DNA of 64,000 nucleotides from Eukaryota sp. TZLM1-RC (GCA_040285825.1 JAUPSS010000003.1:186001-250000), one strand, 5' to 3'. Positions 400 through 60,622 are shown, numbered from the stretch's first letter. The notes: generated from the letters alone by a model not told the origin. Numbers and translations: made by a program.

Positions 400-810
400 A
401 CTCACTAGTGAGATACCTACAAAAGTCATCTGTTGATTCATTATCTATTTTATATGTTGAAAAGAAGCTACAGCTATTACCGGTATTGTCAACGTTTTGG
501 TCTTTAAAACTATGGCGCATCCAAAAATGCAAAGCTTTGTATATCAAAAAGACCGAATCTGAACACACTCATCAAGAGTTATGGTGCATCTGAAGAAAAA
601 GTTATTAATATAGGAGATAATGGAAGAAAGACAAAGAAATTGAAACATCACTACAATACAACAGGTGTTGGTATAAGCAATTTCTTCAAGAGTTTTGGAT
701 ACACTTTACCACTTTAAAATAAAAACAAACATCATCAAAATGTCCGTGTTGTACAGAAAAAGTCTATATGTTTCTGAAGATACAGAATCCAAGACCATGG
801 AGAATTGATT
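400..810 (+). pseudogene. Fanzor1/TnpB-like nuclease remnant F1 (C-terminal part, frameshifted)
   Basis: Manual translation gives KSYGASEEKVINIGDNGRKTKKLKHHYNTTGVGISNFFKSFGY, then after a frameshift TSSKCPCCTEKVYMFLKIQNPRPWR. This matches the Fanzor1 xGD..G.G..F...GY..TS..C..C..NPRPW pattern. Not in the ORF track. Confidence 0.75.
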
Positions 811-939
811 AAAAAATGCCGAAAGGGTAAAAGACGTCTGCCTTTGAATAGTGAAATCTTTGATATCCATTATCCTTCCTTTCTCTCTTCTGTAATTAGT
901 CAGTGGCTGTTTCTTTTCATCCAGTAGCTCTTTTTTGGC

Positions 940-3204
940 ATGGACCTTCTCAATGATATCAATGCTATTCAGGAGCAAAAGAACAATATTTCTCTTGAAC
1001 TTCAAAATGTTGTGTTAAACCATGCACCGGCTTTTGTTGCTGCTGTTTCAGAAGCAGACCATATTTCTGATTTAGCATCGTCCTTGAAATCTGGAATGTC
1101 TTGTCTATATTCTGCTGTTTCTCAACTAGAATCATCGGTACCCAAATTTAAAGAGTCTTGTTACCCTCCTATTGCACCACACACATCCCCCAGTGATTCT
1201 CCCCTAGCCGCTCATCTCAACAACACTCTTACTATGGGACCTTCACGTTCCTTGACCTCTCGCTTCCCTGAATCACTTTCGCCTCCCGATATCCTGTTTT
1301 TCTCTGAGAAAATTAACGTTTTGATGGTTGAGGAAAGGTTTCCTGAGGCTGTTGATGCCCTCTTATCAACAGAAAAAGAGTTGACAAATCTTTACCACAA
1401 AAGTTCTGATGTTAGAGGTTTCTTTGCTGTTCATTGTGCCCTATCAGCAGCGAAACAGGTGCGGAGTGATTTCATTCCCCTACTAACAGATTCCTTGAAG
1501 CGTTTTTGTGAATCTGAAGTGTCCACCATACTATCTTTACGTATTGAGGACTCTGATCAATCAGCTTTAAGTTCTCCAATGAGACTGTTTTCGACTGCCA
1601 GAATTAAACCATCTGACTCTAATCAACTTCCGATTACCTCACTAACCCCATCAAAACACCAAATAATTAATTTGTTAAGTCGTCTTGGTCATTTATCCAC
1701 AGCAAGGGAGACTTTGTTATCTACTTGTGAACGGTCAGCAAGAATCCTCTTGACCAATTCTCGTCTCTCGTCATCATTTAATTTCCCTAGTTCGATCACG
1801 TCATTGATTCCTGCTGATTTTGACTTGGTTCCTTCCCTTTATTGGACCGTGTTAAAGGTATCAAGGCTTTTTCAATTTTCAACCCACGAATCCCTTTCTC
1901 TAGCTCGCGCTCACAAAGTTGATGATTCACGTGTTGATAAATTGATGGTCTCTAGTTGGCTCTCAATGACTTTGAAAAAATTCCTTCTTGATTTAATTCC
2001 CAGTGATCAAACTTGTATATTGAAGTTACTAGGTTGTTACTTTTCCTTTGTTTTTGCTGCTTTTGAAGTTTCCAATAAGCGGACCTCTACATCAATGAAC
2101 ATCCTACCACTAGTAGTGTCTTTTATCAAGGAGCCTTTAATTTTTAATGGTGTTGGTAACTGGTTGAAGGGCTTAAATTTTTCCTATATTATAGATTTTC
2201 ATGACTTAACGAATGTTTTTGTGACGTTGAATTCTGCCAACATTCATCCCTTTTCTTTAATGAAGCAGAAAGTTTATTTGCTTGACCATTTATTGAACTT
2301 CTTTAGAGTTATTGACATATTGGCTCACATCTTTTTGCAAGTTTCAAAGATAGCTAATTTTACACTATCACGATTGATATACAACACAATCATTGATTTT
2401 TTGAAAAGTTTCCTGGATAATCTGAGTAGTTTGTTTCCCAAATCCACTGGCAGTACTGAACAATTTCAAAATACCTTGACACTGTTTACGTCTTGTATTT
2501 GGGGGGCTTTTACTTTGCCTTCGATGATTGATTATGTCTTTTTTGATTGCGAAGATTCGATCAAATTTGAGCCATCACTTATTGATTGCTTTTGTTCTGA
2601 GGAAGCTGCCCAGACAACATTCGATATCCAACATGTCTTTAACGAACAAAGAGTCAGCAAGCCAAGTAAAATCCACAGTTCTCTTTACCAAAGTACTAAT
2701 AGTTTAATAGAAACTTTAGTTTTAAGGTCAACCTTTGAACACTACAACTTTGGATTAAAGTTGATTGATTTCTGTCAGCCTGTCACCCAGTTTGATTCAT
2801 CTTTAGTCGTTCCTTCTCCATGTGCAAAATCGGTGGTTTGTGATTTTCGGTATGCTCTAGACAGGATTCCTCCTTTCCATTTGATTAGTCTCTTTGTTTT
2901 GAAGAAGGCAATTTATTTGGTTTTTAGAAAGTTTGGCGGCGATTCTTTTTACAACAATCTTGCCAACGCATCAATGGTTGCTGTTTGTCAATTTATCGTC
3001 GATTTGTATTATTTAAAATCTGCTTTTTGGTCTATTCTTCCATCAAATTTTGAAATTTCTTTTCTGAATTCCAAGTATTTACCTTTGGTTGAATCATTTG
3101 AATTTCTTTCTGATCAGCATTGGATTGATTCTAGAATATCTTCTACTTTAGAAACTTTTAATTTTCCTGATTTAAGTGAAATTACTATCATTCAAGATGA
3201 TTAA
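940..3204 (+). CDS. Exocyst subunit Exo84/EXOC8-like helical rod protein
   Basis: 754-aa ORF with a Vps51/Exo84-type N-terminus (LELQNVVLNHAPAFV) and an Exo84 C-domain-like segment (INVLMVEERFPEAV). Confidence 0.6.
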   Translation: MDLLNDINAIQEQKNNISLELQNVVLNHAPAFVAAVSEADHISDLASSLKSGMSCLYSAVSQLESSVPKFKESCYPPIAPHTSPSDSPLAAHLNNTLTMGPSRSLTSRFPESLSPPDILFFSEKINVLMVEERFPEAVDALLSTEKELTNLYHKSSDVRGFFAVHCALSAAKQVRSDFIPLLTDSLKRFCESEVSTILSLRIEDSDQSALSSPMRLFSTARIKPSDSNQLPITSLTPSKHQIINLLSRLGHLSTARETLLSTCERSARILLTNSRLSSSFNFPSSITSLIPADFDLVPSLYWTVLKVSRLFQFSTHESLSLARAHKVDDSRVDKLMVSSWLSMTLKKFLLDLIPSDQTCILKLLGCYFSFVFAAFEVSNKRTSTSMNILPLVVSFIKEPLIFNGVGNWLKGLNFSYIIDFHDLTNVFVTLNSANIHPFSLMKQKVYLLDHLLNFFRVIDILAHIFLQVSKIANFTLSRLIYNTIIDFLKSFLDNLSSLFPKSTGSTEQFQNTLTLFTSCIWGAFTLPSMIDYVFFDCEDSIKFEPSLIDCFCSEEAAQTTFDIQHVFNEQRVSKPSKIHSSLYQSTNSLIETLVLRSTFEHYNFGLKLIDFCQPVTQFDSSLVVPSPCAKSVVCDFRYALDRIPPFHLISLFVLKKAIYLVFRKFGGDSFYNNLANASMVAVCQFIVDLYYLKSAFWSILPSNFEISFLNSKYLPLVESFEFLSDQHWIDSRISSTLETFNFPDLSEITIIQDD

Positions 3205-3446
3205 CTATAGTGGAATCATCATTTTATAATTAGATTTCATATCATTTATTACTGGATATATGTCTTTTTATTTATGCAAATTCATTCATTTTAGTTTTTT
3301 CATTGAACTAATTTAAAAATGTAATTAATTGTAAAAATAGTGGGGATTTGATAATGAACTACATCTAACATGGTAAGATTAGATAAATACCAAAAAAATA
3401 AACTTCAATTTTGATCGTAATATTGAATTTAATCATTAATAAACCA

Positions 3447-3878
3447 TCAATATCTGCCTCTTGTAGCATAACTTCTAGGAGCCATAACAAGACCTTGTCC
3501 CTTTGATGCTCCACGGTACACAGACTCTACAATGTCAATAAATTCTTGGTCATCAGATAGTGGTATTGTCAGTTTATTGTTCTCTCCAGTCCCAATGTCA
3601 ACCATAATGTGACGGTTTCGCCAGAAAAACATCACTGACAGAGGATCAAAGAGTTCATACATTGTATTGAAGTCTGGTACACGAGTAATGTCTACCAGAT
3701 ATATGACAGCCATGTTGATAAGCCTACCAGCAGTACGGTACAATGTTTCGTCCATTTCCATACATCGGGGATCATAATCATGACCAAAACGAATGATTAC
3801 TAAGCGCTCCTTTTCGTAAAGAATTGCTTGATCGACAGACCAACCATCTTCAAGGTGAGGAAGAAGAAATTGGCTCAT
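3447..3878 (-). CDS. DIM1: U5 snRNP thioredoxin-like protein Dim1/TXNL4A
   Basis: Highly conserved sequence MSQFLLPHL..WSVDQAI..RLVIIRFGHD..DFNTMYEL..MFFWRNRHIMVDIGTG. Confidence 0.97.
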   Translation of the reverse strand: MSQFLLPHLEDGWSVDQAILYEKERLVIIRFGHDYDPRCMEMDETLYRTAGRLINMAVIYLVDITRVPDFNTMYELFDPLSVMFFWRNRHIMVDIGTGENNKLTIPLSDDQEFIDIVESVYRGASKGQGLVMAPRSYATRGRY

Positions 3879-3989
3879 TGTTACAGATATTGTCTACTGG
3901 TATAATGGCAATGCAGTGTTGGGAAATGCTATGTCTTTCAATTCCAATTTAGAGTGGGGAAATTCCCCATTTGTACACGATCAATTTAC

Positions 3990-4555
3990 TTACAAAAACT
4001 GTCCACTACACAGATATTGAAACCTTTCATTACCACTCATCCTGGCTTCAGCACTTGCAAACATATTCAGACAAGAGAGCATATTTCTATTGAAAAGATT
4101 TGTTGAGCCGTTGTTACTGAATTTACAAGTCTCACCATTACAAGCTAATAAACCATGACTTTTATCAACGAGAATCTTTTCTCTCTTATAGAATTTGGGA
4201 TTGTTGACACTTAAAACAGTATCATCCTTTTCAAAACAAACATGGCCTTTTGCTGAAGTGAATGAGTTTTGTAGAAGTACAAAGATTACCCTTTGATTTT
4301 TTGAATTTAATAGATACGTTTGCGGAAGAAAAACTGTGAAACTGATCTTCCTCGGTCACAGCGTATTTGAGATGTATCAGTATCAAGGTCTGTTAGCAAA
4401 TAACCTGCAACTGCAGTTCTTCTTTGGTATAAGAAAAATCTGAAAAGGGGCCATTGTTTTGAAACTTTCAGTTTTGTGCTAATTTTTGAAGAATGAGGAA
4501 AATTCTGTTCTTGGCTTATACTCTTTGAAAAACGCTTTGTTTTTTCGTTGTACAT
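3990..4555 (-). pseudogene. Fanzor1/TnpB-like nuclease remnant F2
   Basis: Minus-strand translation FTSAKGHVCFEK..NNPKFYK..SHGLLACNGETCK..LFNRNMLSCLNMFASAEARMSGNERFQYLC matches the Fanzor1 C-terminus (HGLL-C..C..NRD..LN..ERP.YLC). Confidence 0.75.
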
Positions 4556-4729
4556 TATAATATGTGTAAAGATTGGAGTAAAAATAATAGGGGTATTCTA
4601 ATTATGTAGATTATTTTGATAATAAATGAAAGTCACAGTCAACGTCGATAAAGTAAGTTGTTGTGAAGAGTTCAAATTTGAATGAATTCAACAACTCATC
4701 ACATCTTCATCTTAAACTCTACAATATTG

Positions 4730-6045
4730 TTGATTTTTTGAAGTTGGTTGTTTTACATGAACACAATTTTTTGGCCCTGAAGTTCAATGAATTCAGTGCA
4801 AAAGTTTTGTCACAATTACAGGGATGTAAACTGTTCCAAATTCCAGATCATGCTTATCTTAGTCCACATTATGGCGGTTTAAGTTGGGCAAAGGCTTCTA
4901 TTGTTACTTCATGTGCTTTTATTGGTGGATGCAGAAATGTAATATTTGAGTTTTCTGAAAGATTTGCCTATTGGGAAGATTTATTAATGACAACACAAAG
5001 TTCCACTGTTTTTGAATTAAATGATGAAATTTCATAAATTGATGTAGAAAAATGGAGTCAGTGCTTTCCCCAATCATTCAATGGCAATATTCCGGAAAAG
5101 AATTTTTTAAATTTAAAATACACTCTTCGAACATTACAAAAACAATTGACTGGAATGTATGAAAATGATCTTTATAATAATATATGCAGCTCGGCTGTTT
5201 TAAATCAAGATCTTCACTCATTGTTATTGGAAAAGGGTGTCTGTGAAAACCAGTCATCAGTTTCTTCACTGTTTGTAACCATTGTACCACGAAGATTTGG
5301 ACTGTGTGCTAATAATGAAGCAGTTGTAACAAAAATGAGGTTATATTTGAATATTCCCATTAATCAATTGTTATTAAAAGAAAAATGTATTTGTTCGAGT
5401 TCAACTCAGCTCACTTTGCGACATGCTCTGAATTGTTCGAAATTAATAACTTATCGTTCTTCATTACATGATGCTGTTAGAGACACTTTTTTTCATATGG
5501 CACAAACCGCAAGAATTTCGTGTATCAAAGAGCCCCTGCTGAAGGAAACACTTTCTCTGAATAATTTTGGTTCTGATGATAGAGGTGATGTATACTGTGA
5601 TTGGATTGATAACTCTGAAGCTGTTGTTGACTTTGTCTTCTGTTATGTTGCAAATGACACTTTGGTTCACAGAAGAAAACTTAATCCTGTAGGTGCTCTT
5701 GAATTTAAAGCTAAAGAAAAACATAGAAAGTATGATAAAGATATCGAAGAAGCTAATGCTGGTAGAAATACACCACTAGTTTTTATTGCTTTCCCATTTT
5801 CGATAAACGGATGACTATCAGTAGAAGCAGGAATTTTTATGAATGACTTTCAACAAATGGTTCAAGAAAAAACAATGAAAAGATTTGATATTTTTATGGC
5901 GTTCACGGATTCAATTTGCCATTATTAATAAAATACCTCGGTTTTTCAATCGAATTAGAGAAGCTTCAGCTAGACAACAAGCAAAACAAGGTTTTGTAGA
6001 GGAGATCTTGGTTCAATGATTTTCGTCCCTATAGTTATGAATTAA
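4730..6045 (+). mobile_element. 5'-truncated RLE-type (CRE/NeSL-like) non-LTR retrotransposon, family A
   Basis: CxC..H..C zinc motif, HDAVRD, EPLL, RGD..VDFV endonuclease motif and KEKHRKY, with stops. Near-identical copies lie at 13.9, 30.4 and 40.0 kb. Confidence 0.85.
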
Positions 6046-8720: not shown

Positions 8721-8751
8721 CTGTCATTGAAGAGTGTATAAGTATGAGATA

Positions 8752-8890
8752 CTGTTTGTGGTTTTCACTGGAAATGTATACTCTGAAATATCAATACCCT
8801 GTAGTTCAACCACATGTCTAAACTTAACCATACGGAGATGATCGGCTTAGATCAAAATACGTTGGATTTGAAGACTCTTATTGAAGTCTT
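8752..8890 (-). ncRNA. Candidate Fanzor omega-RNA scaffold (family A, copy 1)
   Basis: About 135-nt non-coding tail after the nuclease stop, conserved in three copies and containing several hairpins. Similarity ends at AACCACAAACAG. Confidence 0.65.
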
Positions 8891-10493
8891 CTAAAACCTA
8901 GGGGTCTTATTCAGAAAATACTTGCTTACTGCAATCTCCCACTGGTTTCTCGATGTAGAGATATCTCTTGACGAAACCATCCCACATTCTGGACATGCAA
9001 AATAGGCTTTATACTTTTTCCTTTCTCCAGTCTCTATGAAGTAAAGGTCTTCATGGTAAACTTTGCAACAGTTCACCTTGGCTGATGTTCAGTATTCATC
9101 GCCATCCTTCACGGTTGGAAATCGAGCCTGGAGATACTTCAGGAAACGCTTTCTTGGTGTTTTCAATCTTTGACTGGATGGTCCATCACGATTTTCAGCC
9201 ATGTTTTTGATTTTCTGGACAAAATGGCTGCATCTCTTTTGACTATGGATAAAAAAGTCCAAGCGATTTCGGCGAATAGCTTTTCTTTTTCCTTGATGTA
9301 ATGGTGGTCCAATAAACTTTGTCTTTCAGTGTTGTCTCTTTGAGGATTCACATTAAACCACTGTTCCATTTCAGTAGGTTGAGCAACATCCACAAACTTT
9401 GCTACCATTGCAATCAGAAACTAATAATAGCCCTGATGGAATAACAGTTTGGAGTTAGCTGGCTCCACGTAGGAGGGGCGTCATCGAGTGAGGCCTGGGT
9501 GAAAGGACAATGTCTCAATTCAGTGGATTAACAGCTTGTCCAGCTGTCCAACCCACTAGATTACTGTGATTGGGGTCCTCGGTAGGCCTTTGTTGCTTCC
9601 TGGGAGGCATCTCTGGCCTTTTAGAATCACATTCTGCTCATGGTCTTGGATCGCTTAACTATGAGTGCCGTTTAAGTCTTCCACTTCACCTGCACCTCGA
9701 GCTTGCTTCGTTTCATTTTTGCTGTGCCTTTTGCGAGTATCGGTTAATACTGTCAGGAGAAACATCCTCCAGGAATGACAGAATGGTTAATCCAGAGCGG
9801 AGGATAAGAGCAGTAACCTCATTTCATAGTTGCATAATAGATTCTGTGAGGATACGCTCAAAGGTGCGCTGGATTTTATTGTCGGGGACATCACCGCTGT
9901 TGTTCAGCAGAGCTTCCCATTTGGCGCTGATAAGCTTCTGCCACTGGTTGGCAAAGGTGGCAACTCTAGGTGAGAATGTTGCCGGCGCAAAGTAAAGAGG
10001 CATAGGCTTTGGGTGCTAACCACCCGAAGCAACGGGAGCACGTTGTGAAGAAGTTTTGCTTCCAGCACACCAGTCCATCTGTCAAAAAACGGCGGTGTTC
10101 TTCCGTCAAGCGACGGGCTGTCGCAGAAAGAAAAGAGAAATAGCACCACGGTAGAACCCATCGGCCTTCAGTACGGCGACTTGATGAACACAGTGGGGAA
10201 AAAGGCCAGTTCGGGCGCATCGACAGAACGAAAAGGGTGTCGTAAAGAACAGCCTCCCTAACGAAGGCTTCTCGGTTGTGGGGAACCGAGCACAACAAAT
10301 GGTCAAAGCACAGTTTCTAGAACTGCTTCCATGTGAGCCAACTGCTCAGGGCCAGGCGCTGAAATCCCAAAAGTCGAGCCAGCCTACTAGCAAGTACCGC
10401 AGTACGTTGGTTATTCGTAAGCTGATCATACCATTCCGCCTAGACTACAGGAAAGAACAAAGTTTTGACTGCTGCTGCCAATGTGATGGTCAT
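8878..10493 (-). pseudogene. Near full-length divergent Fanzor/TnpB family A, element F3
   Basis: RuvC-I DPNHSNL (~9570), GDEY/TSAKVNCCK RuvC-II region, and CPECGMVSSRDISTSRN Zn-finger/RuvC-III. Many stops and frameshifts. The N-terminus is homologous to F4. Confidence 0.8.
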
Positions 10494-11204
10494 TAGGGCA
10501 GTGGGTGTGACAGTCGAAAAAAAGATTAGTTTCTGTTGTGATAGTCAACAATAGAATTTTGTTTATTTACAATTTGTTACATCCATAAAAACGAGAAGCG
10601 TGTACAGAAAGATAAATCGACACTTTGTTAAATGATTCTGGAACTACTGTAACTATTTTCAATCCCAAAGAGTCAAATAAGATAAAGTTGTTTTTGAAAA
10701 CAGCATTAATTTATTTAACCAAGGGAATTTGTAGGTTCGATGAGTTCGAATAAAGTTTCAACAATTTTGAATGTTATTTTGACTAATCCTTCTCATCAGC
10801 ATGTAACTGATATTTTACCAAGCGTTACGGTCCCAACAACCACATAGGTCTTACCTGAATGTGCCATTTCCACCAATATCATAGATTTATGCACTTCTAA
10901 TCATTTCTGGGCCGTTGTTGATGGTACAATAATTGTTACTTGGTTACGGATACATCGTAATATACCAACTCCTATCGTCACTTGTAGTTCATTAGTTGTC
11001 AATATACACCTTACACCTCTGGTATCGTTTGTTCACTCTCTACGAATCAAATTATTCCAATGTCAACGGACTATGTTCCTGAGCTAATCACTGAACGTCA
11101 TTTTGAGCTTGTCAGCTGAATTTACTAATCAATAAATCAATCAGTAAGTCAAAGTCAAATTATCAGCTTTATTTTCTCTAAAGTCAAGAATTTTTTTAAC
11201 TGAA

Positions 11205-16363: not shown

Positions 16364-16531
16364 AGGAATAGTGGATATGTTCAGTGAGTAAGGAGAAGAG
16401 CTGTCAAAAGAGTTGTTAGAGTATATTGTCTGTGGTTTTCATTTGAAATGCATACCTGTGAATTTCATCTCAAATAGATATCACTCCCTCTTTCACATTC
16501 ACCTCACATTTCATTCACTTTCATAAATATT

Positions 16532-17308
16532 ATGTCTTTAGTTGCATCTGGTACACCCAATTCCGTACAAATCCAACTTTATTACTATCTAGTATTTGGA
16601 GCTCGACGTTTTGGTGCTACTACCATCGGTCTTCCAGTCTGTGAATTACTCTCTTCTCTCTTCACTGAACATTTTGCAGCGGAAGCTAAGAAGAATAAAA
16701 AAGTTGTACATCCTGACACCACTCTCGAAGTAGCCTACAAGCTTACCGGAAATTTTGGTTCTAGAACTGTTGCCTGTCTACAGAATTGGCTTTCTTCAAA
16801 TTCTGGTGGTAATGCTCCTGCTTTCTCTGTTCAGGTCCGTCCCCAGCAAGAGATTAATGTTAAGTTTTACGACGCTTGGTTGAAGGACAAAGAGAAGAAA
16901 GAGATAGAAACTATAACGATAGAACAATTGAAATCACACCCAGCCAATTCAAAGGTGGTACTTGCTGACCACCTGTGGAACACTTGGTTGGAGATAATCA
17001 ACGAGGGAAAGGGAAGCATCACCAGGATTCCTGAGTCCATCATACCCTTCCTGGGTGATGCAAAAAACAATCTGTTTTCGGTTGAATTGGCTGAACAGGT
17101 AGCTCAATATTCAGCCGCTCAATTATTCAAGATTAGAGAACAAGTACTTGAATTACTTGATGTACTTGAGTCTACTTTTCTCAAGAAGTTAAATTGTTTT
17201 GTTATCAGCTTGGGTAAAAGAACTAGTTCAGAAGCTGCCTTATCCAGTGACGTAAATGAAGCTTTCAAAAGAGTGGCTGCTGCGGAAGACACTCAGCATA
17301 CTGATTAA
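16532..17308 (+). CDS. Unknown 258-aa protein, probably transposon cargo
   Basis: Intact ORF with a TCACTTT motif upstream, located inside the putative TIR element. No family recognised. Confidence 0.6.
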   Translation: MSLVASGTPNSVQIQLYYYLVFGARRFGATTIGLPVCELLSSLFTEHFAAEAKKNKKVVHPDTTLEVAYKLTGNFGSRTVACLQNWLSSNSGGNAPAFSVQVRPQQEINVKFYDAWLKDKEKKEIETITIEQLKSHPANSKVVLADHLWNTWLEIINEGKGSITRIPESIIPFLGDAKNNLFSVELAEQVAQYSAAQLFKIREQVLELLDVLESTFLKKLNCFVISLGKRTSSEAALSSDVNEAFKRVAAAEDTQHTD

Positions 17309-17352
17309 TAGTAGTACAATAGTATTGGTTTTTTGAAGATAAAAGTTCTTTT

Positions 17353-17432
17353 TTTTATTTTCAATACAAAATCAATTAAAAGTGTTTTATTTTCAATACA
17401 AAATCAATTAAAAGTGTTTTATTTTTAATACA
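17353..17432. repeat. 32-bp tandem repeat, ~2.5 copies
   Basis: TTTTATTTTCAATACAAAATCAATTAAAAGTG is repeated between convergent ORFs. Confidence 0.9.
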
Positions 17433-17451
17433 TTTTTAATCAAAACTTTAT

Positions 17452-18071
17452 TCAATCCAAATGATCTTTGAAAAAGTTTGCCTTTATACCATGCAAGTAT
17501 GGTGATCTGAATGGGCAAAAATCCTTCCAGCCACTATGGTCAAATAAATTGCTGCAATTAAAATTCATTGTACGTAATAGCTGCTGTGAAAGATTCACAC
17601 CTTGCAGTGGGCTGTGTAACGAATTGTCTCTGACTTTTCTTCTAAGCAGACCAAAAAACGCTTCTATTGGGTTACAATCAGGAGAATACGGTGGTAAAAT
17701 CAAATATTTTAAGCCAGCCAATTTTACAGCCCTGAAAATGTATGCACTTTTATGAATATTAGGAGAGGTTGTTCTTTCACAAGTTGGAGGATAAATGAGG
17801 ACTCTGTTTCGTTTAGTTTGTGACGAGATGAAGGAGTTTGGAAGAGATTGCGTGATGTAGGATTGGGAGTAGATTCAGAACTAGGAAATACTTGGCGTAA
17901 CCAAGTCGATACCGTAGATTGTGCAACGCAGTAGTATTCAGCAACGTCTTGTTGTGTTTTCTCAAGGAAGACTAAGGTGTACACCGCACGAATCTTTGTG
18001 TCTTCGCTAGCGTGTACTTTGAGGCGCCTAAGATCATTACCAGACAACAATAAGTCGATAGTGGCCCCCAT
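17452..18071 (-). pseudogene. IS630/Tc1/mariner DDE transposase, internally deleted
   Basis: An N-terminal HTH (TQQDVAEYYCVAQSTVSTWLR) is joined out of frame to IHK..LPPYSPDCNPIE. The first two catalytic Asp regions are missing. Confidence 0.85.
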
Positions 18072-18308
18072 AGAAGTGAATAAAGGACAGTAAAAAGAAG
18101 ATGTGAGAAATTTATGAAGTGAGAATTAAAATTCACCTATTATTGACCACAGGTGAATCACACAGACTTTCTTCAAACATCATTCAAACTTAATCCAAGA
18201 ACTTACATTCTTGGTGAGATCGTCGACAGACGTTCTAGATTCCTCGAATAATTGGCCCCTAATCTCAGTGAGCCCATTTCTCCTCTAAAACAATACGTAG
18301 CTTTGATG

Positions 18309-20125
18309 CTAGTTTCTTTGTGGACTCTGGAACGCTTCTGGTCTTGTTCCATAGTAGTGCTCACTAATTGCAATTTCTAGATGATTTAGTGATGCAGAAA
18401 TGTCTCTAGACCATACTTGATTACATTCCGGACCACTGAAATAGGCGTTGTGAACTTTAACTTCACCATCAACTTCTCAATAGATCTTTTGGTGTAGCAA
18501 CTTGCAGCAGTTCACATTTGCAGATGTCATATATTCATCTCCGATCTTCACGTTAGCAAATGAACATTGTAACAACTTGAGAAACGCCTTGCGTGGTGTT
18601 TTCACTTTTTGACGTGATGTACCACCACCTTCATTACCAAACCACACCTTTACCTCTCGACCGTTTGCAAATTTTCTCACTTTGTTGATAATGGAGCTTA
18701 ATCTTTTTTGTTTTCTTATAAAGAAGTCAAATGTGTTTCTCCTCAATGCTTTTCCAGCACTCAGATATAATTGCTGTTTTAGCAATGATCGTCTTACGTT
18801 ATTACCTTCATAGTCCTTATAGTCACCGATAGTTGATATTTCAAGCAGATAATGGTTCTATTTCTGCACGTCATAAACATCTATTGATGAGTGGGTCAGT
18901 GAAGCGGAGTGATTGATTTTTCGTTGCTTTGGTGCCAAAAAGATATTGGATACGGTCGGCCCTGAACGTGTTCCAATGGAACCACATAGATTTGAGTGGT
19001 TGGGGTCGATGGCCTAGAACACCATTTCCGTTTCGTCATCAGGTGCCTGCCACTCAGTAGCTTTTGGTTTCTGACGAGGTCTTGGCCGTTCAACCTTGGC
19101 TTGCAAGGCATGTTTTCTATTCCGAGTGGTTTCGTAGTAGTCAAGTTCTCCTCTGGATCTCTTATCAGCCAAGGCTTCTCCGGACAATCTCACTTGTGTT
19201 GTTTTGGGGTGCGGTTTGAAAGTTATACGGACACTATCACCATTAGAAGACATGGTGTAGTCATTAGCTTTTGTTTTAAAAAATTAATAGGGGTTTTTCA
19301 AAATTGTTTGTGATGTGTTTCTGGAGATAAAGTGGTTGAGAACCCATGTGGAAAAGGGGACAAAAATAGGCTTCAAACTAGCGATGGGGGTGAGTCTATG
19401 TCGTCTAAAGGTATGTGCAAAGGCTTGCTCCAGGTGGTTTTGGATTGTTAAGCCGCAACGAAAGATGAAGGTACCATTCTCTTGATTAAGGGTTACTCTT
19501 CGACAAGATAGAAGAGTGTTGTACCTTTGAAGATCACCAACCAAAAAGTTAATCAGAGTAAGAGCCATGGTATGGTGTGTGTTGAGCCAAGAATGAAGAG
19601 GTTCACGAAAGTTCGTGCTTTTGTAAAGAACAGAGCCAGCATAAGTGGCTGGTGCAGGGCATTTATAAACTACTGCATACGAGCGGAAGAAGTTAAGTTT
19701 CCACGACACAAGTCCATCAGCAAGAAGCTGCTGGTAGTTTTTTGCAGCTGGCGGCACTTTGCATCCACTAGTTGTTGTAGAGGCCTACTAGTGGGTAGTG
19801 CATGATTACGACCTGTTCTTGACAAGAACAAGACAGCAAAAGGCCATAATGTAGAAATTCGCTCAAGCTTCTGATACACATGGCCTTTGCCAGCTCTGTT
19901 GAATCGATGTCTGACTTTTGGTTTACAGAGCGCCACAAAGTCAAGACACTGAATCCACAATTGATGCTGAGTCAGAAAATGACTGTCTTCGGGGAAGCGC
20001 ACAGCAAAAACTCTGGCCAGCAAACTGCCGAGGTGAGCCATGGTGGTCACCTTGGTCAGCTGTCCATCAATATAATCACACACTGGCCGCTCAAAGAACT
20101 GATGAAGGGAACAGGCACGTTCCAT
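18309..20125 (-). pseudogene. Near full-length Fanzor/TnpB family A (divergent member), element F4
   Basis: RuvC-I VF*AIDPNHSNL (~19010), GDEYMTSANVNCCK, and PECNQVWSRDISASLN. Homologous to F3, F5 and F6. Confidence 0.82.
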
Positions 20126-21738
20126 GACTGCATAGACCTTACAGAAAACGGAAAAGTTAAATGATATTGAACAGTTTTGAAATTTCTTTTCAAGTTGATG
20201 CTTTACTATCAATAACTGGAACTTGTGCCTTTTGGAGGTGATGAGAGCGCACGTAAATATTCAGCGCCTTTTTTAGAGCAAGATGGTTCTCCAACAACAA
20301 CAAAAATAAAGCCACACCCTCATCAACATTCGGTTTTCAGATAAAATCATTGATTAATCCATTATCTACACTTGTTCAGAATTGAGTTCCCGCTGACCAA
20401 TCAACTTTCACAATGACTGCTGCGACAACTGCGCTAAGTAAGCGCCCCATCATAAAATTTTCATGGTCAGAAGAGTTATCTCACGCCAAAAATTGACATT
20501 TAAATTTTCAATATCTAATACTGGAAAAAAATAGATCATAAACTTTGGAGCATCAATATAAGTTACCATTGTTGGCTTGATAAACAAATACAAAATGTAC
20601 AAAAACGTTAAGTTTATCAAACTTTAATTGGCCAGCAACATTATGACAAAGATCTTGGGATCAGCAAAGCCACTTTAAACTTTACGCTTAGTGGCGTAAT
20701 ACAATTAGACCATGTTAAACATATCCTAGCGGCTATTTCAAGCATTAATATGCTACTTATCAAAAGTTGCATGCTGCATCACCTAAAATTATTGAATGAA
20801 AGCCTCTTCATTCAAAGTGATGAGAAACATCTTACACATTTGTAACTTGAGGCTGAACTCGGTCATTAATTTTCCCAAGTGTTAAATAGGTCAACGTTCC
20901 AAAATGTTGGTTACACACATACAGTGTTCTGGTTGTTCGATTATTCTAGACTGCAACAATGACTAGAAAACTTTTCTTCTTACACTGAAAGAGTTCGCAA
21001 AAACTTTTACCATAAAGCCACATGCTGAAAAGATTAATTGTACCCCAATGGGCATTAACTTCTATGATAAAGGCTTCCACGTTAGAATACCACCTCGAAA
21101 GTAGCATCTGTGAAAAGCAAAAGGTGGCTGAACAAATTTTCGACGAATTGCTTGAATTTGTTTTATCTGTTCCATTGAACGATGAGTTCAGTTCTACAGT
21201 GAGTAGTCATCTAGCTCGATGACATCATTATTGTAGGCAGCACCGCCAACAAGTTCTACGATGGTCTTAAACATGTGCTCAAACATTCACGAACACATAG
21301 AGTTAGTCTTGGTCTGGCCAAGCATCATTTTATAACTTCAAAATGAGAAAGCAGTTTCCAAAACAAGACTAGAACGATTGAATTTTAGGTGAATTTTTCA
21401 AGAGGAAAGACAGTGACAAACGCCCAAAGCCTCATTAGCTCAATCAACTTTATTGAAAAATGGCTTCCTCAAGTAACTGAACATGTTACACCAGTAATCA
21501 AATTGACCCAATAGTAAACCCTGTCGATTGCAGTGGACAGACACTCACGACTTTCACCTAGTAATCATTAAACGCCTAAAAGTTGAGCAGATGTCCCTGA
21601 ACTTTTCTGCTGAATAGAAGCAAATTTTAGTAAGTTGTGATGCTTTTGACGCTGCTATTTCAACATAAATTTTGAAGAAATCGAATACGTTGAGGATCTT
21701 AATACAACAATGTTTGATATGAAATAAAGAACAATCTA

Positions 21739-41399: not shown

Positions 41400-42148
41400 C
41401 CCTTTCTTTGTGGCCATGAGCCCCTACCACAGTAATCTAGTCGGTTAGACAGCTGGTCAAGCATGTGGACCAATGCATTCAAGCATTGTCCTATCACCCA
41501 AGCCTCGCTCAATGACGTCTTCTCTATTGAGCCAACTGACTCCAAACTGTTATTCCGTTCAGGGCTATTATCAGTATCTGACCGCAATGGCAGCAGAATA
41601 TATAGATGTTGCTAAACGTACTGAAATGGAACAGTGGCTTAATGTGAATCCTCAAAGAGACAACACTGAAAGACAAAGTTTATTGGACGACCATCTACAT
41701 CAAGGAAAAAGAAAAGCTATACGCTGTAATCGCTTCGAATTTTTTATCCATCGCCAAAAGAGATGCAGCCATTTTGTCCAGAAAATCAAAAACATGGCTG
41801 AAAATCGTGAAGTGACTATTTGGGTTGGGAAAGGAGGTGATGGACCATCCCGTCAAAGAGTGAAAACACCAAAAAGCGTTTTCTGAAGTATCTCAAGGCT
41901 CGATTTCCAACCATGAAGGATGGAGATGAATTTTATAAATCGTCAAAGTGAACTGTTGCAAAGTTTTCCATGAAGACCTTTACTTCATAGAGAATGGAGA
42001 AAGGAAAAAGTCTAAAGCCTATTTTACATGTCCAGGATTTGGGATGGTTTGGTCAAGAGATATGTCTGTATCGAGAAACCAGTGGGATATTGTAGTAAGC
42101 GAGTATTTTTTGAACACTAGACCCATAGCTTTTAGAAGACTTCAATAA
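41400..42148 (+). pseudogene. Fanzor/TnpB family A, 5'-truncated element F5
   Basis: Degenerate RuvC-I (FVAMSPYHSNL), WVGKGGDGPSRQRVKTP, GDEF, NCCK and WSRDMS. Highly similar to F3. Confidence 0.85.
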
Positions 42149-42284
42149 GAGTCTTCAAATCCAACGTATTTTGATCTAAGCCAATCATCTCCGTATGGTT
42201 GAGTTCAGACATGTGGATATGGTTGAACTATTGGTAATTAACAATTCAGCTAAAGAATGCATTTCCAGTCATAACCACAGACAG
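42135..42284 (+). ncRNA. Candidate Fanzor omega-RNA scaffold (family A, copy 2)
   Basis: Conserved structured tail ending AACCACAGACAG, 18 nt before the next ATG. Confidence 0.65.
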
Positions 42285-42302
42285 TACCCCTGAGTATAAC
42301 CT

Positions 42303-42623: not shown

Positions 42624-42650
42624 GTTTTTGTTTCTGAAACTCTCATTAAT

Positions 42651-45110: not shown

Positions 45111-45186
45111 TTAAGACAAAGCGGTTGTTGAGCAAGAGACTTTGGTAGCAAAATGCCGTGTAGTTAAAATAATTTGATTAAACAAA

Positions 45187-45338
45187 CTATCTGTGGCTTT
45201 CACTGGAAATGCATTCTTTATCTGCAATGTCAATTTCCAATACTTCAACCATATTCACATGTCTAAACTTAACCTTACGGAGATGATCGGCTTAGATCAA
45301 AATACGTTGGATTTGAAGACTCTTATTGAGGTCTTCTA
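45187..45338 (-). ncRNA. Candidate Fanzor omega-RNA scaffold (family A, copy 3)
   Basis: Same conserved tail, ending AGCCACAGATAG. Confidence 0.65.
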
Positions 45339-45870
45339 AAAGCTACGGGTTTAGTGTTCAAAAAATACTCGCTTACTGCAATCTCCCACTGGTTTCTCGA
45401 GGCAGACATATCTCTTGACCAAACCATCCCACATCCTGGACATGTAAAATAGGCTTTAGACTTTTTCCTTTTTCCATTCTCTATGAAGTAAAGGTCTTCA
45501 TGGAAAACTTTGCAACAGTTCACTTTGGCAGATGTATAGTATTCATCTCCATCCTTCACGGTTGGAAATCGAGCCTTGAGATACTTCAGAAAACGCTTTC
45601 TTGGTGTTTTCACTCTTTGACGGGATGGTCCATCACCTCCTTTCCCAACCCAAATAGTCACTTCACGATTTTCAGCCATGTTTTTGATTTTCTGGACAAA
45701 ATGGCGATTTTTCGGTAATGAGAAGGAAATTAGCAAAACCCACAGCAAGGTAGAGTTTTTCAGGATGTCCAGCCAGCCTTTGAAATTTGTTGAGGCTCTC
45801 TCGGAACAGTCTCTCTTTTCGTCTGCGGTTATCAAATTTAATTATTTTCCATTTCTGGCGATTACTTTCC
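45323..45870 (-). pseudogene. Chimeric Fanzor remnant F6 (family B middle + family A C-terminus)
   Basis: 45705-45870 matches 59810-59975. 45323-45705 matches 41765-42148 and keeps DEYYTS, CPGC and SRD motifs. Confidence 0.85.
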
Positions 45871-45871
45871 A

Positions 45872-46195
45872 AGTAAAGAAGAAAGTCTCAGATATTAATG
45901 CTCCTCCTCGTAAAGGAGTCTATATTCATGGTCTTTCATTAGAAGGAGCAAGATGGATGTTCAAGCTGGTTGTCTCGCTGAATCAGAACCTCAGGTACTT
46001 TTGGATGAAGTTCCAGTGTTTTATTTAAAGGCCACGACCTTGGATAAACGAACCCAAAACACCAAGTAATTTTTCGAGTGTCCTGTCTATTCAACATCCA
46101 TTAGGGGTCCTACTTTTGTTTGGACGTTTTACCTTAGTACCAGAGCTCCAGTTTCTATCTGGAGGCTTGCAGGAACGGCGTTGTTATTGAGTTAG
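45872..46195 (+). pseudogene. Dynein heavy chain extreme C-terminal fragment
   Basis: PRKGVYIHGLSLEGARW / LAESEP..VPVFYL / FECPVYSTSIRGPTFVWTFYL..WRLAGTALLL*, with one frameshift and one stop. Confidence 0.88.
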
Positions 46196-46848: not shown

Positions 46849-46850
46849 TG

Positions 46851-52400: not shown

Positions 52401-55182
52401 TTGCTTCGGATTAAAGAACATCCCAGCAGTATTTCAAAATGTAATGATGGAAATATTCCAAATTGATGGCGTTTTCATATATATTGATGATATTATAATA
52501 GTTGGAACGACTTTCGATGAATTCTATAAGAGATTACGAAGAGTCCTCCAATGTGCCAGAAATAGACGTGTAAATATAGGTTTACGTAAATGTAAATTCG
52601 TAACATCCAAACACCCTATTGATATTTTAGGAAGCACCTTCCAGGATAAAACCAGATTTATTAGTAAGAAAAAAATCGAAGCCATTGGACATTAACCTTG
52701 ATGAGAATCCCTAGACCAAAATCAGTGAAAGAAGTTCGCTCATTGGTAGGATCCATCAATTATATAAGAGATTGGCTTCCAGGTATTTCCGAAGTAATAG
52801 CTCCAATTAATGAATTAATTAAAGGGAAACCCAGAATAATTAAATGGACTAACGAGCATGACGATTACTTAAGACAAATAAAAGATTTAATAGTTAATCA
52901 CATGCTTTTAGAACTACCAACCCCCGGGAAGTGAGTACTCATTAGTACTGATGCCTCAATTGTTGCAGTAGGAGGAGTTATTTGGCAAGAAATTGAGCCT
53001 TACTCACCTGCAGGAACCCCGTTGAATAAGGGAAAACTAAAACCTCTGTCATTTTACAGTAGATTGCCTACAGAAACACAGAAGAAATGGTCCACTTTAC
53101 AAAAAGAATTATATGCAATACTTTAAATTCTAACTGAAAGTTGCTAAGAGAGCTGTCTTTTGACTAGAGATCTAACAATTTTCACCAATCATAAGAACAT
53201 TGCATTCCTGGCAACTGCGCCAGAGAAAAATAGAATTGTAAAGAGATGGTTGCCGATACTGTCTGAATTCGACTTTGACATAGTCCATGAACCTGGTGAA
53301 GATAACCACTGGGCAGATATGTTATCGAGAAACATCGACCTAACTCAAGAGGAAGAACCTTCATCAATTTGCAGTATTAATAAACCAAACACGATGTACT
53401 CAAATTATGAAATACCTCCTCTAATTGACGACTCAGATTCGGAATCTGAAGATCTCCCATCAATCTCGTCACTTAGCAGACACCAAGATTTACCCATGTT
53501 TTCTTCTTGGTTCTCTAAGATTAGATCGGAACAACAGAGCGCATAAACAATAACGCAATCGAAAACGCAATTTTTGATGAAAATACTCAAATTTGGAGAA
53601 ATAATAAAAATCAAATTTTAATTCCAAAAAGCCTCAGAAAACAGGCACTATTATTAATTCATGGATTGGTTCAATCAGGCCACCCCAGCAAAAACGACAG
53701 TCTACATAAACTGTCCAAAAGCGACTTTTTCTGGCCTAATATGAGAAAGGACCTCATAAACCACATCAAAAGATGCCCAACTTGTCAAAAAACGGCACCA
53801 GTTAAAAGAACAAAAACACCCTCCACAGGTTCCCTTTGGGCAGATCGTCCTTTTGCCAGACTAAATGTTGACACAATTGGACCTCTGAATACTGATAGTG
53901 ATGGTAATAAATACTTATTAGTATTTGTAGATTCTTTTACTGGATATTCAATTTTAGTCCCTCTGAAGGAACTCAATGCCTTAGAGACCGCAGACGCTTT
54001 GATTTGGAACGTTTGCGCAATTTTTGGCATACCTATGTTAATTCATAGTGATAATGGTCCTGAGTTCGCCAATGAGACTTTTAAGATAGTGTGTAATAGA
54101 TTAGCTATTGAGATGAGTAACTCAATACCCCACTACTCTGAAAGTAATGGACTCGTAGAGCGAAAACATAGAGACGTTCTACAATGCTTGAGGAAATTAT
54201 TAATAGATTTTAATGATTACGGAAATTGGTCTACTTATGTACCCATATCCCAACTATTAATAAATTCCACTAAAAGCAGAAAGACAGGTTTTACACCTTA
54301 CGAACTAAAGTTCGGATCTTCGATTAGTCCAAGATCGGACCCTGCAAACATATTAGGAAACTTATCAAAATTTGATTCCAATATACCTTTATTAGACGAT
54401 ATTAAAATGAAAAATACTCGTCTGCAAGAAAAAAGGGAAGAAGCAGAGCGTCATCAATCATTAAATACTCCGATTTCAGTAGACAATACTAATTCGCGCT
54501 CTATAGTATTTAATATTGGTGACTATGTCCTACGTAAAACCAAACAGAATAATAAATTACATGGATCTTGGAACGGACCCTTTTTAGTAATAGACCATCC
54601 TTCCAACTCCACTTTATTATTAAAGAATCTTATCACTGGCACCGAATTAAAAGCTGCCAAGAAAGATTGTAAAATCTATAACGCAGATAATCCTCAGGAT
54701 ATCGAATTTCTAAAGGCAGTCGCAGCAGGCGATGCTGAGAAACATGTTATAGAGAAAATCCTCTCAGAATATAATTCTGACTCAGGTAGTTTCTGTACTG
54801 TTCAATGGTTTGGCGGTGAGACAACAGAAGAGCCTCTCCATTCAGTTAAACATTCAGAAGCTTACAAGTTGTTCAGCAGGAATAACAAGAAAATTGGAAA
54901 ACGTACCTCTAGTCAACGTAAGAGTACCTCCAATAACTCTACGCCTTGCAAGAGGCCTAGACGCAGTACTAGAATTAGGAAGTGATGCTAATTCTCAGTT
55001 TAGATTAGGTTATTTGTAGTTATTTAGTTATTTAGTTATTTGTTTATAGTTTAGATTCATATTTATATAAGCCTATTAGCTCTGAAAAAGGGAAGAAGCA
55101 GTGTTGGCGCCCTAAGGCTTTTATAATATGAATAGAAAATAAATTATCTTTATCTCAACCACTTTTGCAACCTAAGGCAACA
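49429..55182 (+). mobile_element. Ty3/gypsy chromovirus-like LTR retrotransposon, copy 2 (recent, defective)
   Basis: Identical 81-bp LTRs at 49429-49509 and 55102-55182, TSD GTCT and a PPT. Encodes a CTFC..GH..C knuckle, protease, RT and an integrase-chromodomain ORF. Has a gag deletion and pol stops. Confidence 0.96.
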
Positions 55183-56689: not shown

Positions 56690-57025
56690 TGAATCGTATT
56701 GTTTAAAAAGGCTGGTTCTAAGGTCTTTTTGATTGATGAGTTTCGAACCAGTTGCTGTTGTTTCAACTGTAAGAAAGCGGAGAAAACACTTGAAACATTC
56801 CGATGGTGCAGAAATCCTAGGCCATGGAAGAGGCAGCATGAGATGTCTATTCGTCACAAGCTTACCATGAGTAAATCATACGAAAGTTTGTGGCATAGAG
56901 ATCGCAATGCTTCGCTAAATAAGTTGGCGGTGATGTGAGCACATGTAAAAGGTGGAGATAGACCAGAATACCAGAAAGGAGAAAATCTTCTATTTCACAA
57001 AAACTCAGTCTCTCTACATTAGTGT
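56690..57025 (+). pseudogene. Fanzor1 C-terminal remnant F7
   Basis: LFKKAGSKVFLIDEFRTSCCCFNC..NPRPWK..WHRDRNASLN..GDRPEY, containing RuvC-II Glu and RuvC-III Asp. Confidence 0.9.
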
Positions 57026-57038
57026 AAAGAGGACACTT

Positions 57039-57068
57039 ATTTCATTGTTATAGACAATATCTGTAAGA
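57039..57068 (+). promoter_or_regulatory. Conserved pre-ATG motif CATTGTTATAGACAATATCTGTAA (also at 3879-3896 and 59178-59207 on the minus strand)
   Basis: GACAATATCTGTAA is identical at three loci, 2-9 nt upstream of ATG, each downstream of a Fanzor remnant. Confidence 0.75.
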
Positions 57069-59170: not shown

Positions 59171-59179
59171 TGTTAATTG

Positions 59180-59535
59180 TTACAGATATTGTCAATAACA
59201 ATGGAATTAGTACTCTTTCAAGAAGATGGAACTGGAAGTGGATCAAATTTACTGTGAATTTTACTTATCATACATTCCCCTATAAAATTCGCTCCTTTTT
59301 TCACCTTTCTCAATGTCTACTCACAGGCAGTAAGAGACATGTAGCATCATTTGACAAAGACAATCATGATCTTCATCAATGGGCTACCTCACTTAAATAT
59401 ACCTACTGCTTTCACAGAACAAAGCCTCGCGACTTGTTGTATCTAAGTGGATCTATCAAATGCTACTAAGGTATTTGTAGATCGGTCTCAACAGTTTTTC
59501 AAAAGTTTTTGTTTCTGTATGCTCACGTTCCCTAT
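59180..59535 (-). ncRNA. Candidate omega-RNA of Fanzor family B
   Basis: About 350-nt non-coding tail with nested stems GTAGCATTTGA/TCAAATGATGCTAC, CACTTAGATA/TATTTAAGTG, GCTTT/AAAGC and ATGTCT/AGACAT. Confidence 0.55.
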
Positions 59536-60622
59536 TCATCTTCTCAACAGAGATTCTGGGCAAATGTATCTTTCCGGCCACAATTCTGCTTTCTTCTTAA
59601 TTTGAATATTTTTTGCAGCGGAAATATCTCTGTCATATACTATTTGACACTCAGTACAAATACGCATCTGCCATGAGCCTACTTGAATATTCCCGGCCAT
59701 GCAACAACTTGACAGTTTCCTTGTATTAAATTCACTGGTTGGCAAGTGCTTCACGTCCTTTTGATAACACAATCATTTTCTGAAAGCCCTTGCTGATCCA
59801 TATCGATTGACTTTTCGGCAATGAGAAGGGAAATTAGCAGAACCCACAGCAAGATAGAGTTTTTCAGGATGTCCAGCCAGCCTTTGAAATTTGTTGAGAC
59901 TCTCTCTGAACCGTCTCTCTCTCTTCGTCTACGGTTATCAAATTTAATTATTTTCCCTGCCAAATACACTTTCCTCCTGACCAAATTCCAATGGTTCAAA
60001 TATTGGTTGAAATTTTGAACGGAATATTGGTGGGGAGAGTGTTTACTGGTTGAAAGCTTTGTCATGTATCTTCTGCCAGTTGGACAAGGGATAACTCCAC
60101 ATTGATTATCAGTTAAGAAGTAACCACATAATCTAGATTGTCCCAGATCAACGCCGATAAGGGGCCTTTCAGGTAAAATTTCGACTGGATGTCTACGTCT
60201 TCGACGGGGCATTTTTTAGTACCCTTCAACTGTGTTTCTCTGGTTTTGTTGGCATTAGGGTCACTTTTCATTTCATTTTTTGGTCTTCTTTTCTTTTTCG
60301 GTGGTTCATCCAGCTCACCTGTGTTTTCTGAGTCATTACTTTTACCTTCAAAGGTCAAAAGCAGTTCATTACCATTAGTTTTCAATAAAAAAATTTTAAA
60401 TCTATTTTTCCAACTTTTTCTGTTTATATTGAATTTTTGGTAAGGACATTGTTTAAATATTCGTTTCAGACATGTATTTTTGATAAACTTTGTTTTGGAA
60501 GATGATCCTTCAATAAGTGGAAATTTTTTCACAGATTGGAAAACATGTGAAGGTACCTCATGAAATTTAGAACATTTATGAGAAGCTTCAGGTATTATTC
60601 CAAATTTCTTCCAGCAATGCAT
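59536..60622 (-). pseudogene. Fanzor/TnpB family B element F8
   Basis: RuvC-I LIGVDLGQSRL, RuvC-II SEFNT.K..SCC, and CTECQIVYDRDISAAKNI. Frameshifted. Confidence 0.88.

Follow-up and report, generated by a model that had tools for sequence, protein, structure and literature searches.

Why do Fanzor elements, RNA-guided-nuclease transposons of the TnpB family, end just upstream of host start codons in the genome of the free-living metamonad Skoliomonas litria? To our knowledge, the role of Fanzor nucleases in eukaryotic genomes is unknown. The question was raised by a 64,000-nt stretch of strain TZLM1-RC (GCA_040285825.1, contig JAUPSS010000003.1, 186001-250000; hereafter the window), for which a preliminary description made from the sequence alone had claimed that all eight Fanzor remnants with a visible 3′ end share the orientation of a host gene and lie upstream of it. 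According to PMC10530073, the guides of TnpB and Fanzor derive from the right-end flank. Three assembled skoliomonad genomes and RNA-seq data have been published (Williams et al., 10.1101/2023.05.03.539051), and that genome paper mentions transposon homologues only in passing. We compared the window with the sister assemblies TZLM3-RCL (GCA_040285805.1; RCL below) and GEM-RC1 (GCA_040285855.1). A literature search found no published account of a start-codon-proximal position of Fanzor elements, in agreement with the preliminary description, which had regarded the layout as apparently undescribed.

To delimit the remnants, a custom hidden Markov model (HMM) was built from the Fanzor C-termini (RuvC-II, Zn finger, and RuvC-III) of full-length relatives together with the window pieces and was applied to all six-frame segments. 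The scan returned exactly eight remnants in the window, F1–F8, and nothing else; therefore, the initial list of visible 3′ ends was complete and unselected. Seven of them scored strongly as RuvC/TnpB sequences (F2–F8; E values, 1e-12 to 1e-58), and F1 scored weakly (E value, 0.064) and has an NPRPW motif in common with F7. The Pfam domain Cas12f1-like_TNB (PF07282) was matched by F6 (1.9e-7), F7 (7e-5), and F8 (5e-6), as well as by the full-length relatives P0014, P0015, P0018, and P0019. The RuvC-type motifs AIDPN, GDEF/Y.TS, and SRD.S were legible in P0014 and in the window remnants. By C-terminal sequence the remnants fall into at least four families (F3/F5/F6 with the relatives F4 and the P0014 type; F7/F1; F8; and F2), where at least three divergent ones had been proposed. 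All eight window copies are broken by stops or truncations, and the density amounts to approximately one Fanzor per 8 kb. An intact open reading frame (ORF) follows on the same strand at the 3′ side of all eight remnants (Table 1), and the claimed arrangement was thus borne out in every case.

The tails of different families, including those of a sister species, end in a common 28-nt signature consisting of (A/T)ATGCAT, six variable bases, and TGAAAnCnCAG. This signature is the 3′ arm of a hairpin of approximately 60 nt, whose stems differ by family yet remain paired (z scores of −2 to −5 for L003, L009, L002, and F6). A tail of approximately 135–200 nt is conserved among F3, F5, and F6, and an Rfam search of the window and of the outside loci L001–L003 gave no match. 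The hairpin is likely the 3′ end of both the omega-RNA scaffold and the transposon. The terminal motif was also modelled as a position-specific scoring matrix, and distances were taken from the last base of ...CnCAG to the ATG. In the window, these distances were 22 nt (F5), 35 nt (F3), 66 nt (F4), 80 nt (F6), and 81 nt (F8), in line with the closeness originally reported. A terminal motif was also sought at F1 and none was recognizable, as had been noted before. Two other identities of the tail were considered and rejected: a metamonad-type intron or 3′ splice site (...ACCACAG) has no matching 5′ site, the motif being the 3′ arm of the hairpin, and Helitron-like ends (CTRR, A/T target) do not fit the flanks.

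Even shorter distances were produced by a second sequence, the block GACAATATCTGTAA[CG]A, which has exactly three copies in the window, located 2 nt (F2/DIM1), 2 nt (F7/ORF57069), and 9 nt (F8/USP) before an ATG. Comparison of family members identified it as F7-family sequence, and the F7 tail itself ends in the block GACAATATCTGTAAGA (57053-57068), flush with ATG 57069. Between F2 and DIM1, an older tail piece TTGAAAGACATAG (3941-3929) is followed by the GACAATATCTGTAACA block (3894-3879), flush with ATG 3878; alignment with the F2-like copy of L001 demonstrated that the final 77 nt are not F2-family sequence. The boundaries of F8 were obtained from its family copies in L010 and L011, and the 81 nt beyond its right end are not F8-family sequence and contain the GACAATATCTGTAACA block (59193-59178), followed by the USP (UCH) ATG 59170. 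Judging from these alignments, the block in F2 and F8 is the remnant of an older tail between the end of the newer element and the gene. A fourth copy was present in L009, with the same preceding 45 nt of F7-family tail (tail and block, 7195-7287) and an ATG directly after it that opens a frame of seven codons only. A 7-nt tandem duplication, TAACAAT, was also observed between the block and the USP ATG (59171-59186); minus this duplication, the USP junction would equal the DIM1 junction GTAACAATG.

The orthologues of DIM1 in TZLM3-RCL and GEM-RC1 are 84 and 81% identical, respectively. The S. litria gene begins at the ancestral ATG, 2 nt from Fanzor-derived sequence. The orthologous-locus comparison proposed in the preliminary description revealed an RCL locus that is empty of Fanzor, with DIM1 58 nt from its divergent neighbour. 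The GEM-RC1 gene is preceded by 2.9 kb of unannotated DNA with a weak tail-like motif and no detected Fanzor coding sequence. Because the gene is conserved and retains the ancestral start codon, the DIM1 leader, and very probably its promoter, would be Fanzor DNA in S. litria. At DIM1, ORF57069, and USP alike, 2–9 nt lie between the Fanzor-derived block and the ATG. Since no non-Fanzor DNA intervenes between tail and ATG, the leaders of these genes appear to be element-derived, and since 2–9 nt leave no space for a native promoter, their promoters are probably element-derived as well. These junctions argue strongly for leader or promoter donation at the three genes, as the preliminary description had suggested for housekeeping genes. 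A similar role is known for the outward and hybrid promoters of bacterial insertion sequences (ISs) and for eukaryotic transposable elements (TEs) that donate promoters or leaders: an element directly upstream supplies the promoter or leader, and its end is kept by selection. In contrast to those donors, an RNA-guided nuclease element would here contribute its omega-RNA/right-end hairpin, whose promoter activity is suggested by the lack of other upstream DNA.

To determine whether the layout recurs, outside loci were fetched from the three skoliomonad genomes via Fanzor proteins from a whole-library search, blind to context; three loci reached via Fanzor fragments are on the same contig as the window. 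The window had been picked because of the pattern, and the samples are small. The same layout was found in 10 of 13 further right ends (Table 1), and the distance from ...CnCAG to the ATG was measurable in eight of these ten (5, 24, 27, 40, 45, 57, 71, and 78 nt). L009, in which a 50-codon ORF begins 6 nt past the tail, was kept out of this count as ambiguous. Another ORF of that locus, ‘u169’, was rejected as a candidate for a host gene that adjoins the left end in divergent orientation, as it is part of a repeated 5′ region common with L001.

The reading that we prefer, and that we consider about equally likely to hold or to fail as a whole, combines promoter-spacer settlement, conversion of the right end into a host leader or promoter, selective retention, and stacking behind it. 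Several Fanzor families would colonise the very short, promoter-bearing, mostly divergent spacers of a compact, strand-alternating genome. The hairpin right end would thereby come to lie within one leader length (5–81 nt) of the next ATG, and the host gene would thereafter be transcribed from or through it. The final tens of nucleotides would then be kept by selection, the nuclease gene would decay or be overwritten as long interspersed nuclear elements (LINEs), long terminal repeat (LTR) elements, or Tc1 elements insert, and newer Fanzors would accumulate behind older tails. Transcription from or through the right end would thus explain both why the tail end survives while the nuclease decays and why newer Fanzors are stacked behind older tails. 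Leader or promoter donation, the keeping of right ends by selection, and a promoter-spacer preference are all inferred. Gene-adjacent pieces are always 3′ pieces, never recognizable 5′ pieces. Later TEs are found on the 5′ side or within the tail, and the link between motif and ATG is unbroken (Tc1 in F4, LINE in L008). The nested Tc1-like element in the 3′ region of F4, proposed earlier, is plausible (approximately 16514-18122; ORF 16532-17308, +), although its inverted repeats are short and weak.

Stacks of this kind were found at several places. An old tail (L003, 7375) precedes the Fanzor FzA, which has a 13-nt repeat on both sides; the tails at L010 8918 and L006 9464 are each followed by a Fanzor; F4 carries two tails; and the F7-like tail of L010 adjoins a repeat termed R. 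In the window, a ninth tail-like motif (61958-61985), absent from the preliminary description, has no host gene downstream and is followed by repeat R and by the Fanzor F10 in the same orientation; F10 has a RuvC-I motif near 63800-64000 and runs off the window. Altogether, approximately six stacks have one orientation, none is convergent, and one pair is back to back.

The gene order of the window bears directly on orientation. The window is compact with few introns, and its gene strands alternate almost perfectly, leaving six convergent, five divergent, and two tandem spacers. TE-free spacers of the same genome, taken from the gene tables of same-contig loci and the window, span 57–470 nt (divergent, 94 and 181 nt; tandem, 209 and 470 nt; convergent, 57–243 nt). 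All TE classes are absent from the six convergent spacers of the window, and every divergent spacer in it is enlarged by TEs. Five of the convergent spacers measure 68–243 nt and the sixth (42623-43545) approximately 540–920 nt. This avoidance extends to every TE class, so that Fanzors are not special in preferring promoter spacers or in surviving nowhere else. The Fanzor-specific trait is that the TE end touching a gene is always a Fanzor right end.

Co-orientation is automatic in a divergent spacer, because whichever way an element lies there, the gene beyond its 3′ end begins on that side and runs in the same direction. Of the seven judgeable window cases, six are in divergent spacers and F5 alone is in a tandem one; divergent spacers likewise predominate outside the window. 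Tandem spacers hold three co-oriented cases versus one opposed, which decides nothing. Set against present-day non-genic DNA, which TEs have inflated, the layout has a probability of 0.022 for each element. Under a fairer null, which gives a right end equal odds of facing the start or the end of a gene, the window gives 8/8 (p = 0.004), the outside sample 10/13 (p = 0.046), and both together 18/21 (p = 0.0007), with 14/15 in the S. litria subset. The co-orientation that had been called systematic thus recurs beyond the window. As the divergent positions indicate, it is largely a product of genome geometry, and a homing system is not proven by it.

Several observations weigh against promoter-spacer settlement followed by retention. 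Three outside right ends depart from the layout: in L010, the right end of an F7-like remnant points at the 3′ end of a helicase gene; in L003, a 723-amino-acid (aa) Fanzor is convergent with its neighbour; and no co-oriented gene lies within 1.7 kb of the Fanzor in L006. The left-end boundaries are uncertain as well, although the left ends that could be placed, approximately 42 nt (L008) and 100 nt (L009) from a divergent ATG, agree with insertion in a very short spacer, where both ends of an element must be near start codons. In approximately 45 upstream regions of host genes without a Fanzor, no tail-like motif was found, the sole exception being a loose resemblance upstream of histones H3 and H4 of RCL. 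Finally, geometry leaves unexplained the same-orientation stacks, in which new elements are found between or behind old tails, and the block GACAATATCTGTAA[CG]A that ends at an ATG in four loci.

Geometry together with purifying selection might nevertheless account for the whole pattern, if insertion were random, elements survived only in mid-spacer, and the right end had no function for the host. Such an account agrees with the predominance of divergent spacers, the alternating genes, the short TE-free divergent spacers (94–181 nt), and the 58-nt RCL DIM1 spacer. It also agrees with motif-to-ATG distances that are evenly spread from 5 to 81 nt, with the left ends near divergent ATGs in L008 and L009, with the outside count of just 10/13, and with the tandem ratio. 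However, the 2–9 nt at DIM1, ORF57069, USP, and L009 exclude room for a native promoter, the gene-side remnants are always 3′ pieces, the stacks share one orientation, and convergent spacers of similar length in the window are Fanzor-free. As a complete explanation, geometry alone is unlikely. Tf1 of fission yeast, the P element, Hermes, and mPing target nucleosome-free 5′ regions, and the Fanzor insertions resemble theirs in occurring in 5′ gene regions and in being absent from 3′ spacers. Unlike those elements, which have no fixed gene-facing end and usually insert tens to hundreds of nucleotides upstream of the transcription start site, the Fanzors have one end beside the ATG, flush in four loci.

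Alternatively, an active, end-specific docking would place the right end at ATG-proximal DNA or directly behind a resident Fanzor tail. It could proceed by site-specific insertion as a single strand, in the manner of IS200/IS605 and with the terminal hairpin as guide, or by capture at Fanzor-made breaks. Docking would explain why the block is followed by an ATG at four independent loci, one with a 7-nt duplication, why tails are stacked in the same direction at six places, and why a 13-nt direct repeat surrounds FzA in L003. A hairpin with the motif approximately 540–820 nt upstream of three Fanzor ORFs also resembles the left ends of IS200/IS605, which carry direct subterminal hairpins. The right-end hairpin is general among our elements; the upstream motif was present in three of the nine elements checked and missing from the other six, and it could equally be an older stacked tail, as it clearly is in L010. 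No ORF for a transposase, such as the Y1 (HUH) TnpA of IS200/IS605, was found next to any copy in the gene tables of the loci examined. Target-site duplication was limited to the 13-nt repeat at FzA, with none at the other 12 ends, and no common motif was found among the left flanks of the P0014-type and F8-type copies that would define a fixed target or target-adjacent motif (TAM); right and left ends alike have no consistent duplication or flank motif. The L009 ATG may belong to the block itself, as its frame has only seven codons, and the three exceptions to the layout also argue against docking, which we rate as improbable. A joint version, in which end-specific insertion or homing brings the hairpin (and, for one lineage, the block GACAATATCTGTAA[CG]A) right up against the ATG, replaces the leader or promoter, and lets the omega-RNA guide read the first housekeeping codons, is similarly doubtful. 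If true, the target could not mutate freely, and the elements would constitute a start-codon-anchored, RNA-guided selfish system.

The elements share with TnpB OMEGA (obligate mobile element-guided activity) systems of IS200/IS605 and with Fanzor (Bao & Jurka 2013; Saito et al. 2023; Jiang et al. 2023, PMC10530073) a RuvC and Zn-finger (TNB) gene followed by a conserved, probably structured non-coding 3′ region up to the right end. They also share a guide predicted from the right-end flank, several coexisting families, and many copies without a transposase. They differ from the known systems in right ends that lie 2–81 nt from host ATGs in most copies, in their extreme density, and in that no associated transposase, inverted repeats, or TAM are definable here. 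By the TnpB rule, the right-end positions predict guides that would read the host leader or start-codon region, as the preliminary description had proposed, the use of such guides being a prediction only. RNA-guided homing would operate as a drive if the guide read a conserved start region, so that an empty allele could not mutate away from cleavage. This would fit the derivation of guides from the right-end flank (PMC10530073), the flanks that are leader or first codons at L002 (5 nt), L009 (6 nt), F5 (22 nt), and L011 (24 nt), and the RuvC motifs retained in intact relatives. Homing endonuclease genes and TnpB-assisted transposon retention (Meers et al. 2023) similarly involve a selfish nuclease whose recognition site lies in conserved host sequence by its own insertion. 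In contrast to them, most guides predicted here would read non-coding leader, since in most cases a guide of 16–20 nt would stop before the ATG, which is 35–81 nt off. In addition, a right end facing the 3′ end of a gene would do as well, yet is rare, and all window copies are dead. Homing is thus very unlikely. Least probable is regulation in trans, in which intact Fanzors elsewhere would use the tails of dead copies as guides to repress or activate host gene starts: it has in its favour the layout, with a conserved tail retained beside the host leader after nuclease decay, and the bacterial precedents of RNA-guided transcription factors of the TnpB family, TldR and Cas12f-sigma (10.1101/2023.11.30.569447 and PMC12259090), whose guides are likewise aimed at promoter-proximal host DNA (here, as predicted). 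Those bacterial factors, however, lack nuclease activity and are encoded at a distance from the DNA that they target, whereas the relatives here keep their catalytic motifs and have the flank as guide region. No nuclease-dead Fanzor was found, and the flanked genes have no common functional theme.

Table 1. Features of the window and outside right ends with the same layout (the latter given by locus; coordinates in nt; aa, amino acids).
Feature	Coordinates	Strand	Content	Right end and following gene
F1	508..939	+	Zn-finger piece 723-809	approximately 130 nt to ATG 940 of the 754-aa ORF
F2	3879..4355	-	C-terminal remnant 3993-4355 (HMM 8.7e-13); family-specific 3′ region to approximately 3955	ATG 3878 (DIM1)
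F3	8721..10502	-	near full-length decayed Fanzor, P0014-like (HMM piece 8894-9325); tblastn covers P0014 residues 3-532	tail 8756-8893; terminal motif 8783-8756; ATG 8720 (WD40)
F4	16364..20260	-	decayed, coding 18312-20260 (HMM piece 18312-18857); tblastn and HMM	two tandem terminal motifs (16483-16456, 16457-16430); ATG 16363 (DP/E2F)
F5	41401..42302	+	5′-truncated, coding 41401-42145 (HMM piece 41449-42145); tandem spacer	tail end 42280; ATG 42303 (106-aa Zn-rich ORF)
F6	45111..45887	-	C-terminal remnant 45326-45887 (HMM piece 45326-45841); HMM 7e-58	tail end 45191; hairpin fold z -2.2; ATG 45110 (521-aa coiled-coil ORF)
F7	56693..57068	+	C-terminal remnant 56693-56992 (HMM piece 56693-56935); HMM 2e-22	ATG 57069 (ORF57069)
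F8	59171..60826	-	decayed, coding 59524-60649 (HMM piece 59539-59772); left end near 60826	right end 59252; ATG 59170 (USP)
F9/F10	61958..64000	+	tail-like motif 61958-61985; repeat R 62019-62181; F10 Fanzor 62811 to window end	
LTR retrotransposon, two copies	21862-29610 and 49530-54982			
Host ORFs, first part			754-aa ORF (weak Exo84_C), DIM1, guanylate kinase, WD40, CFAP77-like, GtrA-like, DP/E2F	
Host ORFs, second part			USP9X-like giant, Zn-rich 106-aa, coiled-coil, TBL1-like WD40, aldo-keto reductase, ORF57069, UCH protease	
L001				27 nt to ATG; RbAp48-like WD40
L001 (F2-like)				no tail motif found, distance not measurable; Alg6
L008				71 nt after subtracting LINE inserted in tail; FG-nucleoporin
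L010				40 nt; DEAH helicase
L011				24 nt; THH1-domain gene
L011				78 nt; 449-aa gene
L002 (RCL)				5 nt; PDCD2
L003A (RCL)				45 nt; 163-aa gene
L003B (RCL)				57 nt; 161-aa gene
L012 (RCL)				approximately 600 nt, no recognisable motif; co-oriented gene

The gene at 16363 has a Pfam match to DP. Two of the host gene names given originally are without solid Pfam support: the 754-aa ‘Exo84’ ORF matched Exo84_C with an E value of 0.043 only, and a homologue search returned none besides itself; the same holds for the ‘Yvh1 Zn’ label of the 106-aa ORF (42303-42623), which begins right behind F5, with no phosphatase domain upstream. This ORF is either a stand-alone gene or part of a longer gene split by the Fanzor insertion. 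Upstream of the WD40 gene at 47038, the stretch 46853-47037 seemingly holds a LisH-like first exon, whose ATG is near 46853, and then a short intron that carries ACTAAT, resembling a branch motif; the genome is therefore intron-poor rather than intron-free. In addition to the LTR copies, the window contains one Tc1-like element and a LINE-like repeat in four copies. An abundant repeat, present at 4657-5811 and elsewhere, was considered as a Fanzor and rejected, as the L008 copy reads as a LINE reverse-transcriptase C-terminus; the repeat had no Pfam match, and an Atlas search gave no family and a sub-threshold zf-RVT lead (0.87).

Further observations were made at the Fanzor loci. Repeat R (62019-62181; L010:5665-5828) opens with a sequence resembling the conserved block (GAACAATAGCTGGAAG) and was found at two loci, each time behind a different Fanzor tail; an F10-type element may have it as its left end. 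In L008 (11040-13107), a 5′-truncated LINE with a GTGTGAA target duplication lies inside the terminal hairpin and cuts off the final 15 nt of the tail from the body of the Fanzor; these 15 nt are still 71 nt upstream of the FG-nucleoporin gene. L001 contains a large inverted duplication (1344-3936 and 5393-7982) of a P0014-type Fanzor and the downstream RbAp48-like gene; the annotated start of this gene (8286) is likely too far downstream, with the probable ATG at 8010, right behind the Fanzor tail. A block of approximately 360 nt (L002:7581-7935 and L003:7511-7864; 89% identical, with long identical stretches) precedes two Fanzor ORFs by 70–140 nt, although blastn cannot align the remaining DNA of the two because of its divergence. 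The block had no Rfam match and could be a shared promoter, a 5′ module, or a non-coding RNA. The 723-aa protein of L003 (10494-12665) had no Pfam match and a clear Fanzor C-terminus by the custom HMM (5e-16). At 3758-6733 of the same locus, a 991-aa Ulp1-protease (C48) protein is encoded 127 nt upstream of another Fanzor and may be part of the same element. The RCL histone genes H3 and H4 have TCAAAA[AC]CACAAA 38–50 nt upstream, loosely like the terminal motif, and RCL histone genes (L002:14740-16570 and 15215-17195) carry GTGTT-GAAAA-ACAC stem-loops at their 3′ ends.

The layout described here concerns a free-living metamonad in which Fanzors are among the commonest repeats, and in which their guide-defining end lies beside the ATGs of essential genes, DIM1 among them. 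If leaders are supplied by the right end, as promoter-spacer settlement with retention would have it, S. litria would show plainly how transposons of RNA-guided nucleases can rewire the promoters of a compact genome. Active docking, if real, would represent a new targeting logic for the TnpB family.

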